Notes under the pieces: model-generated
Database searches by the model: none
The model's input: only the letters and a program-made list of their open reading frames with translations
Told to the model about the DNA's origin: nothing
In this document: in pieces, positions 14,774-18,682 of the stretch
Layout: each line of letters opens with the position of its first letter
How positions within the stretch are numbered: position 1 is the stretch's first letter
Program-made: the position numbers and the translations under genes
Source: Octopus bimaculoides
Taxonomy: Eukaryota
Reading direction: 5' to 3'
DNA length: 61,441 nucleotides
Assembly (NCBI RefSeq): GCF_001194135.2
Contig: NC_068988.1
Location: 13,682,155 to 13,743,595, forward strand

Positions 14774-14816
14774 CTTTAAGTGCTAAAAGATGTTCTTTTT
14801 CACGGGAACCCTCCAT
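14774..14816 (-). CDS. TRAPPC13: TRAPPC13 coding exon 1 (MEGSREKEHLLALK, phase-1 donor); remaining exons not seen, probably left of the window
   Basis: aacaacATGG start; AAA G|GTAAGT donor; matches recalled human N-terminus MEVNPPKQEHLLALK|VMRLTKP; adjacent to TRIM23 as in human. Confidence 0.8.
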
Positions 14817-17800
14817 GTTGTTTAATATAAGACTCGCAGAAACGACGAAGGAGGATAAATTATTTGAAAGAAGTATTGTACGGCAATAAAGTAAAAAAAA
14901 AATTTTAATAATATTTTCATAGGTTATTACACTTCAGTATTTCAATTTGTTTAGTCTTTTTTATATAGCAGAATATTTCAAAAAACAAATAAATAAATGT
15001 AATTGAGAAGTATGGAAAACTATAAGCGATATAATATATACAGATTCTTCCCAATACAGATGAATTGCGTTTCACCGCTGTTAAATAGTAATTTATTAAT
15101 GATGTGATTTTGTGGGCGGTAGAATTTATGCAAACGCTAGAGAGCAGTAGGTACTTTTGGATTTCAAAATGAAATCGTGCTCTGTCGAACTTAGCTTTCA
15201 ACCTTTAAAAGGCTTGTTTAGCTAAGATCAGTGCTGACATATGAAACTATGATCAAAGGCGTTCCAACCATGACCATCCAAATTTTTGTATATTCAGGAC
15301 GATATTATCCAATGTGCCCTTTTTTTTTCTTTTAAGACTATAGGCTGTGATAATATTATGCTAATATTGTACGCAATTTGCATGCGATTAGATCTATTCC
15401 AGTTCGGTGTAACAGCTTTGCTTTCGGTTGAATAAAACATCTGAACGGCAAGTATTATTACATTGTGAACTATAACTATTTCTGTAAACATGTCCATGAC
15501 AAACTTCCACAGTGTAATTATAGTAAATTTCCATTCTATGATCCAGATATGACTGAGGTTTGGCTACTGCTGCAAGAATGGAAGATACTCTGGACATCAA
15601 AAAATTTTACATCTTACTTGTTTCAGTCATTGGATTGCAGCCATGCTAGGGTATCGCTTTTGAAAGGTTTTAGTGGAACAAATTGACCCCATTATTTTTT
15701 TTTCTTTTTAAAGTCTAGTACTCATTCTATCATTCTAGTTTGCCAAACCACTAAATTACGGGGGAGATAAACAAACTAACAGCGGTGGGATGGGGAACAA
15801 AAACAAACACATACACTCACACACACACATATATATATATACGACAAGCTTCCATATAGTTTCTCCGCTAAATTCGCTCGCGAAGCATTAGTCCAAGACA
15901 CTTGCCTAATGCGTCGCACTGTGGGACTGAACTTGAAACCATGTGATTGCAAAGCGAAAAAATATTTAAAAAATCAACATGTTTCATTTTATTTAAACTA
16001 ACTGTGATGGCCAGAGAGAAAATTTCCAGGTAGGTGAAAACCTTGGAACTTATAACAATGAAATTAGCCATCAGTGGTCAGTGTAGGCACAGTTACCCCC
16101 CTTGACAGCGGGTTCAAACAAGCTGGCCATATATAGGGGGCGTTACGCAACATTAAGGTTCAGACAGTCATCTCGTCCTCTTTCTACACTGGGGTGCGAA
16201 CTGCGAAGACATAACCTGACTGGCTCTCTCTCATACCGCACGCCAGCTAACAAATAGGAGCAAAAGCACAGAAGACCATGGCCTCTACGCACCAACCATT
16301 CCATTTATCATTCAGTTGTGTATATACGTGTGGCCACAATAAACATATTTAAAGTTACAACCGTGTTTATATATTCTTCATCTTGGTTTACTACCAAATG
16401 AGATTATAGCCTTCTGAGTGAGTCACATTAGGTGACTCAGCAACAACCTACCCATCTATATCAGTACCTTGGCTGACCTAAATGATATATTTTGGTATTA
16501 TTTGGAATATATCCGCTTTATATATTTTTATCTATGTCAGTAAAAGTTTAACTGCAAGTATTTCAATACTTATAGTCTTAAATACCTTTCAATGTCTCTT
16601 TATTGTGACGGCCGTGTGATATGATACAGAAGAGCCATTCTCGTCACCTCACATCACATGGTCTTTACGAATCAATCGTTCCTAAAGTATCTCAAAACTA
16701 GAATAAATTCTAGGTGTCTAAATTCATTGCTTTGGTTCAATTTCACTGAGACTGAATTACGGAAATAGTGGAACCAGTAATGATACATTGATCATATTCA
16801 CTTCATAGCCTTTTTCGCTATTTGAAATTTGGTGGAGCATGGCTATATAGAGACTAGAGAGATTCTCACCCCGCTCGATATCCTGATCATCAATGTCAAG
16901 TAAGTAATCTTGGCGACAGTTTGAGAAGTAGTGAAGTTCATAAATATACTACTTTTATCATCAATTCTCCTTTCTTTATCAGAAAGATTTGGCACTGAAT
17001 CTTTTTTTCCTAACCATTTAGTGTCCATAATTTTTCATGTAAAAGTCCCTATCAACTCAAACAGTCCTAGCGTGTTTTTCTTTGTGATTAGAGTCTATTT
17101 GATTGCAGCATTTTACATATTCAATGTGTTGACAATAAAACCGTTTGTGTGGTATTTTCTGCACGTTATCTTGGCCGTCTTACAGCCACTGGTTAGCTAG
17201 TAGATAAACGCATTATATATAGCTAATGTCTGGCAGAGAAAAAGCGCCAAAGACGAAATTGTTAATGATAATCCCGTGTTATTTACAATACAGGAATTCT
17301 AATGAGTTAAACATTTGCCGGATCCTTTATTTTACTATCAAACTGGTTACCGATAATAAAAATAATTCTCAATCAGACTGAATGGGTTAGTCACTTGTTG
17401 GCGTCATCAATCTGAAAGCAACCTGTTTATTGATAATTATCTTTACATGTGAATACTGTGATTCAGGTTCGTTTCCTATGTAGTGAATTGGTGTTTGGAA
17501 CTGCCAGATATTCCTGCTACAGTATTAATAGGAGCTGGATAAGGTGTATACAGATAAAGCAACAGTAACATCCTATATGTCATATATCAAGAGGGCTGTT
17601 TTTACAGCATTATAGGCACTGAAGCAAAATGCTGCACCGAGACCCTTACAAACACAACCACAGCATATACATAAGATAGCTTGTAGGCACCATAGACCCC
17701 CACCTTCTCAAGCAACTGGTCATGCGTCTTCGCATATGTATATATATAGTGGAGAAAAAGTTCACTGCGCTACTTAACACTATATACATATGTGTGTGTG

Positions 17801-18595
17801 TGTGCACCTTCGTTGCTCTTCTATCTTGGTTCCTGCATCTCCACAGCCAAGCTAATAAGGGAACCTCAACATGGTTCCTTGACCAATAGGAATTAGCAAT
17901 CGAACATTTTTCGAAGCATACCCTTCCATCTTAAAATAAGTAAATAAATAAATAAAAGACGCAGTTGATAATGTAGTCCCAGACAGACTATGTCTTAGAA
18001 CAATAAGACAGGGTTGTCACAACTGGAATGCTTTCGATCATAAAGCCTGCTCGTTCAGAGCCGACTTTAGGTAAATAGGAATCAAATATACATTTGAACT
18101 AGGCTCAGTATTAGTACTGGTAACAAGACGTCTCAGAGAAAAGTAATTAATGGTAAACAAATTTGAACTTATTTGCCTACATGATAGTTGCGAACGTCAT
18201 AACATACATTAAAGAAATTTCTTTGAGTTTTAACTATCAGTTAACAAAACATCTCCAAAATGGTTTTCTAAATACACACGTTTCCCCCCTTGATATGCAA
18301 AGGTAAACACTACAAAATCCCTCAAAAAATTCAAGGTAGTCATAAAGAAAAATAGGAGCCATCTTGATTTAAATGACAAAACCTATCTTCAACAAACACA
18401 CAGCAGATAAAATACATCGGTTTCACGTGTGAATAAAAGAGAGAGAGAGAGAGAGAGAGATTTTAATAAAATATATCTATGTATACTATGTATGAAGAAA
18501 CTCGATTATTTTCAAATTATGGCACTTTTTTACATCCGTAGAAATCGAAAATTTTGCTTTTGTACTGTTCTTCAACTTGCATAATGTTTGTAAAC

Positions 18596-18682
18596 ATGGC
18601 CACAGGCGGAGCGTCAAGCTATTCGTCCTGCAGTGCTTCTTTGCTAGGATCGCAGGATAATGTGCAACAGTCACCTGAAAAT
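18596..18682 (+). CDS. TRIM23: TRIM23 exon 1 ([29 protein letters not shown])
   Basis: aaacATGG Kozak; AAT|GTAAGT phase-0 donor matching exon 2; length comparable to the human pre-RING segment. Confidence 0.8.

Follow-up and report, generated by a model that had tools for sequence, protein, structure and literature searches.

A head-to-head TRAPPC13-TRIM23 gene pair in Octopus bimaculoides and its conservation among bilaterian animals

The two genes at the Octopus locus

A stretch of 61,441 nucleotides (nt) from Octopus bimaculoides (RefSeq contig NC_068988.1, positions 13,682,155 to 13,743,595), referred to here as the window, carries the 5' end of TRAPPC13 on the minus strand and TRIM23 on the plus strand, head-to-head by both direct reading and annotation. 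It is placed on chromosome CM046608.1 of assembly GCA_001194135.2, near 13.7 Mb, and positions below are numbered from its first letter. A preliminary description, made from the DNA letters alone, proposed that the two genes form a bilaterian-age pair held together by a shared promoter. The questions are whether the pair is that old, and why it has been kept. The TRAPPC13 features are as follows.

14774 to 14816, minus strand: first coding exon, MEGSREKEHLLALK plus 1 nt, ending in phase 1 (direct reading, NCBI coding sequence start, orthologous exons)
14768 to 14773, minus strand: GTAAGT splice donor of intron 1 (direct reading)
1 to 14767, minus strand: 5' portion of intron 1, with exon 2 past the left window edge (tblastn and motif scan)

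The reverse complement of 14774 to 14816 is ATGGAGGGTTCCCGTGAAAAAGAACATCTTTTAGCACTTAAAG, followed by GTAAGT. Its codons run from ATG GAG GGT TCC through GCA CTT AAA to a last unpaired G, so that the translation is MEGSREKEHLLALK plus the first base of the next codon, giving a phase-1 donor, and the peptide has a single occurrence across the six-frame translation of the window. The NCBI annotation has a minus-strand TRAPPC13 gene whose coding range ends at position 6233 of locus L001, which is window position 14816, the A of the ATG; the preliminary description had identified this exon and its phase correctly to the base. The product of the annotated gene has the Pfam domains TRAPPC13_N, TRAPPC13_M, and TRAPPC13_C. 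Isoform X3 of the O. bimaculoides and O. sinensis protein (P0242, XP_014784133.1, 406 amino acids) starts with MEGSREKEHLLALKVMRLTKPSL and scores 1.6e-51, 5.1e-54, and 1.1e-42 against those 3 domains in that order. A TRAPPC13 protein of Argonauta hians (P0245), which like P0242 is a member of a 90% cluster of octopod TRAPPC13 proteins, has the identical N-terminus joined to VMRLTKP.

Because the N-terminus of P0242 is the window peptide followed by TRAPPC13 domains, the exon splices to genuine TRAPPC13 sequence. The preliminary description had allowed that it might lead into something else; P0242 instead joins it to VMRLTKP and the rest of the protein. This splicing is taken from NCBI gene models, with exons 2 onward lying outside the window. 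Neither tblastn with a human sequence nor motif scans find exon 2 (VMRLTKP) or later exons in the window, and intron 1 is therefore longer than 14.7 kb. The exon also carries the motif (R)E(K/R)E(H/Q)LLALK, and a phase-1 intron directly precedes VMRLT(K/R)P; the comparison took in exon 1 of 5 species (Haliotis, Pecten, Branchiostoma, Talpa, and Ptychodera) and 10 orthologous N-termini.

X3 is one of 5 annotated N-terminal isoforms of O. bimaculoides TRAPPC13. The other 4 start with MSYCLPL..., MLSVK, MKVG, or directly with MRLTKP, and their first coding exons were not found in the six-frame translation of the window. Among the octopod proteins surveyed (P0241 to P0248), and beyond them, O. sinensis has one further N-terminal isoform (P0237), and Logan transcript proteins that match cuttlefish (Acanthosepion) TRAPPC13 have yet different N-termini (MINITLQ...). 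Inside intron 1, an open reading frame at 28 to 312 on the plus strand, containing HVDLCCIQE, resembles the endonuclease part of a long interspersed nuclear element.

TRIM23 is laid out in 10 coding exons, all on the plus strand.

18584 to 18682, plus strand: exon 1, with the annotated ATG at 18584, the conserved MA[T/S]GG start at ATG 18596, and a phase-0 GTAAGT donor (direct reading, splice model)
33056 to 33346, plus strand: exon 2, RING, a 100% match to P0001 (tblastn and splice model)
34707 to 34985, plus strand: exon 3, B-boxes (tblastn and splice model, Pfam)
39771 to 39950, plus strand: exon 4 (tblastn and splice model)
40490 to 40705, plus strand: exon 5, coiled coil (tblastn and splice model)
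41686 to 41820, plus strand: exon 6 (tblastn and splice model)
42468 to 42597, plus strand: exon 7, start of the ARF domain (tblastn and splice model)
43578 to 43688, plus strand: exon 8, ARF (tblastn and splice model)
44464 to 44588, plus strand: exon 9, ARF (tblastn and splice model)
45326 to 45505, plus strand: exon 10, ARF C-terminus and stop codon (tblastn and splice model)

The exons were searched for by tblastn with human TRIM23 and human ARF1 serving as leads only, and were given canonical GT/AG boundaries. Besides exon 1, 9 coding blocks are found from 33059 to 45487, and joined in frame to exon 1 they give 577 amino acids. Exon 1 ends at 18682 with ...QSPEN, then GTAAGT, and the intron that follows is 14.4 kb. 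The model is 100% identical over its full length to the NCBI O. bimaculoides TRIM23 (P0001, 581 amino acids), which differs solely by an upstream start (MFVNMATGG...) at the in-frame ATG 18584, 12 nt before 18596. The real start is probably ATG 18596, which would make the NCBI version 4 codons too long, because other molluscs start with MASGG and because the bases around 18596 (AACATGG) form a better start context. In Octopus, Haliotis, and Pecten alike, the TRIM23 ATG comes after a GTAAA(C/T) string. The protein has the TRIM23/ARD1 architecture, with a RING, B-box(es), a coiled coil, and a C-terminal ARF GTPase domain in one polypeptide; the Pfam scores are 5.4e-68 for Arf, 2.3e-05 for zf-B_box, and 5.3e-04 for zf-RING_UBOX, the last below the cut-off. 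By BLASTP it is 45-79% identical to orthologues across animal phyla, with the full-length matches at about 60-79%.

Conservation and loss of the pair in other animals

The neighborhood of TRIM23 orthologues was checked for 10 kb to either side. TRAPPC13 lies directly upstream of TRIM23, on the opposite strand, in 5 further species, with the following ATG-to-ATG distances.

Haliotis cracherodii, abalone: 217 nt
Pecten maximus, scallop: 217 nt
Branchiostoma floridae, amphioxus: 241 nt
Talpa occidentalis, mole: 1026 nt
Ptychodera flava, acorn worm: 717 nt

The pair is thus adjacent and divergent in Mollusca (Octopus, Haliotis, and Pecten), Chordata (Branchiostoma and Talpa), and Hemichordata (Ptychodera). 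The mole genome was used as the mammal; the human genes are presumably head-to-head as well, at 5q12.3. Exon 1 of TRAPPC13 in these 5 species reads MEGGREREQLLALK, MEGTREKEHLLALK, MEPNREKENLLALK, MEVNPPKQEHLLALK (Talpa), and MEAGREKEHLLALK, each with the same motif and phase-1 end, and the mole sequence agrees exactly, phase-1 donor included, with the mammalian version given in the preliminary description, MEVNPPKQEHLLALK. TRIM23 too opens with a short coding exon, of 18-33 codons, whose end lies no more than a few codons from the first RING cysteine in 9 of 9 species. For both genes, the position of the first intron is conserved. TRAPPC13 and TRIM23 are found on one contig in Diadema, Liolophura, Ridgeia, Amblyraja, and Polyodon, and the annelid and echinoderm evidence is of this same-contig kind. 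No TRAPPC13 gene is on record under the exact product name for Owenia or Strongylocentrotus.

Because the adjacency is present in the intermediate lineages (Haliotis, Pecten, Branchiostoma, Ptychodera, and Talpa), where the preliminary description had considered that it might be absent, and because exon-1 peptides and intron positions are conserved, it is well supported that the divergent pair was inherited from at least the last bilaterian common ancestor. The mollusc, chordate, and hemichordate loci bear out the age first proposed. Survival of the pair spans more than 500 million years.

That the exon is a spurious open reading frame, or that the adjacency arose more than once, seems to us barely conceivable. 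Such a doubt could draw on the position of exon 2 outside the window, which leaves the splicing not visible within it. Against it stand the NCBI gene models of 2 Octopus species and the Argonauta hians record, which share the N-terminus together with TRAPPC13 domains and rule out a spurious 14-residue reading frame, and the same exon, phase, and orientation in 6 species of 3 phyla, which rule out an independent origin in molluscs and chordates.

Pairs of this sort have been described as conserved ancestral microsyntenic pairs (CAMPs), of which nearly 600 are known, enriched for the 5'-5' orientation and for spacers below 1 kb (Irimia et al. 2012, PMC3514665). The defining property, unrelated genes adjacent in distant lineages that span protostomes and deuterostomes, is found here. 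As in the CAMPs of the co-regulated 5'-5' type, such as HSPD1-HSPE1, the 2 genes are unrelated and divergent across protostomes and deuterostomes, the spacer is very short in most species, and there are lineage-specific losses. The Octopus spacer, well above 1 kb, is unlike the short CAMP spacers described there. The main text of that paper does not name TRAPPC13-TRIM23.

An earlier origin than Bilateria was looked for among metagenomes. A scan of metagenome contigs for the TRIM23 RING exon gave 51 loci, and 2 near-identical contigs, L013 (OMLO01003741.1) and L014 (Ga0126337_10022328), have a complete TRAPPC13 of 14-15 exons facing TRIM23. Their TRAPPC13 exon 1 is MDTGLREREHLLTLK, and the start codons are 161 nt apart on opposite strands. 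In a third contig, L011, MDSGLREREHLLALK faces a TRIM23 RING exon. The TRAPPC13 reconstructed from L013 and L014 is 53-58% identical to every bilaterian tested, when bilaterians are mutually 59-74% identical, as one would expect if the animal were non-bilaterian or fast-evolving. An exact look-up of 3 reconstructed variants of this TRAPPC13 gave no match in the collection searched. The Ga0126337/Ga0099819 series may be coral metagenomes. A TRAPPC13 homologue search based on the amphioxus protein had no cnidarian or ecdysozoan among the best 120 matches, and a search with a 62-column TRAPPC13 N-terminal alignment gave 4 candidates and no match.

Synteny, which the preliminary description had proposed to compare, gives a mixed answer: the mollusc, chordate, and hemichordate species above have the pair, and 3 arthropods and the whelk Babylonia do not. 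In the termite Zootermopsis, TRIM23 is head-to-head with an unrelated gene of 261 amino acids. In the millipede Chamberlinius, RPS8 is upstream of TRIM23, and in the stick insect Bacillus there is no gene within 10 kb of TRIM23 where TRAPPC13 would be. Babylonia likewise has nothing within 10 kb there, its TRAPPC13 being on a different chromosome-scale contig. By tblastn there is no TRAPPC13 sequence at the termite, millipede, or whelk TRIM23 loci. The 2 genes of the snail Lymnaea stagnalis are on separate contigs of 1.11 and 1.98 Mb.

Several further observations belong with these loci. TRIM23 is tail-to-tail with a calreticulin gene in both the termite (L007:20950-26449) and the millipede (L008:13771-15823), which may be an arthropod-wide linkage in place of the TRAPPC13 one. 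Many termite-gut metagenome contigs in the series L032 to L046 have the TRIM23 RING exon and are presumably termite host DNA; no TRAPPC13 is found in their fetched flanks, in agreement with Zootermopsis. The land snail Bradybaena similaris has 2 adjoining TRIM23 genes (BsWGS_02198/02199), probably a tandem duplicate.

Broken pairs are what one would see if retention were a matter of neutral inertia. This account says that a tiny ancestral spacer is a small target for breakpoints, that the pair stays intact where rearrangement is slow and is lost where it is fast, and that no co-regulation is selected. It is the main rival to a shared promoter, and we hold it to be possible and on the whole unlikely. 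The loss in 3 of 3 arthropods sampled and in Babylonia, with both genes kept elsewhere, speaks for it, as do the different contigs of Lymnaea. It sits less well with survival on at least 6 separate branches, and with survival in a coleoid cephalopod, whose genome is extensively reorganized according to Schmidbaur et al. 2022 (PMC9023564).

On this last point the preliminary description was right that the pair is kept in a rearranged cephalopod genome and had implied too much about how remarkable that is. Schmidbaur et al. counted 275 ancient metazoan microsyntenies in the squid Euprymna versus 216 in scallop, and because coleoids keep that many ancient blocks, survival of the pair in Octopus is not surprising. 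TRAPPC13-TRIM23 resembles those blocks as an ancient linkage that has outlasted the coleoid reorganization. The ancient Euprymna blocks have larger intergenic distances than the cephalopod-specific ones; that compactness analysis required at least 3 genes per cluster according to its figure legend, whereas the pair here has 2. Neither TRIM23 nor TRAPPC13 is mentioned in the text or the supplements examined.

The outer flanks of the pair differ among species. In the window, a radical-SAM/UPF0004 gene (562-residue product, CDKAL1-like) occupies 47235 to 61441 on the minus strand, tail-to-tail with TRIM23; an open reading frame at 55207-55473 and a tblastn hit at 53302-53240 are parts of it. The 3' side of TRIM23 is not conserved, because the mole neighbor there is a WD40/cyclophilin gene rather than a CDKAL1-like one. 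At the Pecten locus the tail-to-tail neighbor is an Autophagy_act_C (ATG3/ATG10-like) gene (L003:24941-30407). The amphioxus TRAPPC13 locus (L004:2600-8350, L004:25408-25806) has several extra copies of exon-like pieces, with the LTLPQNFG exon present 5 times and the RQYLYCLKPK/KLDIIWKT exon several times, some of them past TRIM23 on the other strand. Runs of N, which are assembly gaps, lie in the window at about 22.8-23.2, 28.9-29.4, 53.9-54.9, and 59.6 kb and are bordered by simple repeats of TA/TATG type.

Short spacers, the Octopus spacer, and candidate promoters

The abalone and scallop spacers are of equal length, 216 nt each (L002:9785-10000, L003:9785-10000), and they have in common the 11-mer ACTTCCGGTTT, with an ETS-type core, at 34-38 nt from the TRAPPC13 ATG; the core within the motif is ACTTCCGG. 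By our estimate, the number of 11-mers that 2 sequences of 216 nt have in common by chance is about 0.01. Because the start codons are 160-240 nt apart in 4 lineages, both genes there would have to initiate in one compact region, and those spacers, judged by position, would be bidirectional promoters. That a gastropod and a bivalve share an 11-mer at nearly the same offset in spacers of identical length is awkward for neutral inertia, as is the excess co-expression and spacer conservation that ancient 5'-5' pairs show as a class (PMC3514665).

In mammals, bidirectional-promoter pairs are head-to-head genes whose start sites are separated by less than 1 kb (Adachi and Lieber 2002, as cited in PMC3514665). 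By comparison with that description, the mole ATGs are 1026 nt apart with a GC-rich and CpG-rich spacer (GC 0.54; CpG observed/expected ratio 0.72 versus 0.25 for the locus), and the invertebrate spacers of 160-720 nt are within the distance. The Octopus ATGs, 3.77 kb apart, differ from such pairs, and the start sites there probably lie more than 1 kb apart, an untranslated upstream exon being possible. Spacer CpG observed/expected is above that of its own locus in all 6 species.

The Octopus distance from ATG 14816 to ATG 18596 measures 3780 nt, in line with the 3.78 kb first reported, and to the annotated ATG 18584 it is 3768 nt. The features between and around the start codons are unstranded.

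14817 to 18583: divergent intergenic spacer, 3767 nt, with no called gene in the annotation
15604 to 15955: repeat in the spacer resembling a short interspersed nuclear element (SINE-like), by blastn
14601 to 15200: CpG-undepleted patch covering TRAPPC13 exon 1 plus the flank upstream of it, candidate core promoter, observed/expected 1.0-1.37
18401 to 20000: CpG-undepleted patch covering TRIM23 exon 1 plus the beginning of intron 1, candidate core promoter, observed/expected 1.04-1.19
4601 to 6200 and 7201 to 8200: 2 CpG-undepleted patches in TRAPPC13 intron 1, observed/expected 1.05-1.25

At least 9 other copies of the SINE-like repeat are found by blastn elsewhere in the window, at about 70-74% identity, and the spacer also has short microsatellites. 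Rfam and tRNA scans of 14000 to 19500 gave no match, and a six-frame reading of the spacer showed no long open reading frame of note and no convincing coding remnant. CpG observed/expected is 0.70 for the spacer versus 0.35 for the locus, and 0.63 in the spacer middle. When taken in 400-nt windows, for which the median over the whole stretch is 0.29, the top 5% (at or above the 95th percentile) fall in 4 places, around both first exons and in the 2 patches of TRAPPC13 intron 1, with none in the middle of the spacer. Because CpG-rich patches lie at both exon-1 ends and none in between, the Octopus promoters may now be separate, 2 cores pushed apart by insertions, to judge from base composition. 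That the spacer could grow to 3.77 kb, take in a repeat, and lack the mollusc motif suggests that its architecture is under little constraint, which is a point in favor of neutral inertia.

The intron-1 patches may serve other TRAPPC13 isoforms as alternative promoters, or they may be young repeats. The linkage itself could be that of a genomic regulatory block, with enhancers of one gene lying within the introns of the other as a bystander. Such blocks are named in PMC3514665 as the second major source of ancient pairs, and the very long Octopus first introns (more than 14.7 kb in TRAPPC13 and 14.4 kb in TRIM23) would suit it, as would the CpG-rich patches at 4.6-6.2 and 7.2-8.2 kb. Such blocks are, however, anchored by developmental regulators of a kind to which neither gene belongs, and a head-to-head arrangement across 160-240 nt points to the promoter class. 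We regard a regulatory block as quite improbable.

Why the pair may have been kept

The explanation we favor, as reasonably probable, is that an ancestral compact promoter, shared or overlapping, left scarce room for harmless breakpoints. The 2 genes are unrelated, single-copy, and of housekeeping type, and are transcribed apart, TRAPPC13 (a TRAPPIII subunit) on the minus strand and TRIM23 (a RING/B-box/ARF E3 ligase-GTPase) on the plus. The abalone, scallop, amphioxus, and metagenomic spacers suggest that in the ancestor the start codons were probably about 200-250 nt apart, and both genes would have been transcribed from the one compact region. In so tiny a spacer nearly every base would belong to one promoter or the other, and a breakpoint there would disable a gene. 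With almost no safe site for a break, the pair would therefore persist even in otherwise scrambled chromosomes. In the octopus lineage, insertions, at least one of them SINE-like, would then have stretched the spacer to 3.77 kb. From CpG content, the core promoters are now probably about 3.5 kb apart, each beside its own first exon, and inertia may by now be the main thing that holds the Octopus linkage. Ancestry, orientation, spacer lengths, and a single conserved motif are observed in the genomes compared; promoter sharing and its part in retention we infer from them.

Several points weigh against this explanation. Octopus is itself the weakest case for a shared promoter, with its 3.77-kb spacer, SINE-like insert, lack of the conserved ETS-like motif, and top-5% CpG windows only at its two exon-1 ends. 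The 11-mer ACTTCCGGTTT is without a match at 2 or fewer mismatches inside 14817-18595, and the spacer has tolerated a 17-fold expansion. The constraint is not absolute, because the pair is broken in arthropods, Babylonia, and Lymnaea; it has been lost several times, and broken without loss of either gene. Also, because at least 4 further N-terminal isoforms of TRAPPC13 start outside the window, the gene may not rely on this promoter alone. The repeated losses and the relaxed octopus spacer are what favor neutral inertia as the main rival to the compact promoter.

The preliminary description had gone further and tied the shared bidirectional promoter to a common role of the products in membrane traffic and autophagy as the cause of retention. 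As a proposal this is plausible. TRIM23 has a role in TBK1-dependent autophagy (PMC12075517), and it is TRAPPC11/12/13 that steer TRAPPIII toward autophagy (PMC13571812). The explicit form, in which co-expression is selected because the 2 products are needed in a fixed ratio for membrane traffic/autophagy (TRAPPIII; TRIM23-TBK1), can point to these literature ties of both proteins to autophagy and Golgi traffic, and to the autophagy-type gene that also adjoins TRIM23 in Pecten. On the other hand, arthropods and some gastropods have the genes apart, the TBK1 role of TRIM23 is known from vertebrate antiviral work, and no paper was found that joins TRIM23 and TRAPPC13 functionally. We consider it unlikely.

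The boldest version has the linkage pre-bilaterian and actively kept, with TRIM23, an ARF-type E3 ligase, and TRAPPC13, a TRAPPIII subunit, co-regulated in autophagy/Golgi traffic. We doubt it and give it little weight. If it were true, the conserved spacer, with its ETS-type site in molluscs, would be a bidirectional promoter some 600 million years old, and gene order would predict an undescribed physical or pathway interaction of TRIM23 with TRAPPIII.

In the literature no paper was found that describes TRIM23-TRAPPC13 as a conserved pair, and none with both TRIM23 and C5orf44; the 4 papers that mention TRIM23 and TRAPPC13 together are, by title and abstract, apparently association or expression studies. 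We place the pair, as new or at any rate undescribed, in a known class of ancient pairs. Alone, it adds one case to the several hundred known and alters no current view. It could be a clue that TRIM23 and the TRAPPIII complex are functionally connected. It also offers a natural experiment: the spacer measures 160-240 nt in most animals and 3.8 kb in octopus, and the genes are fully apart in arthropods and some snails. A comparison of promoter use and co-expression across these states could tell shared promoters from a lack of breakpoint room.

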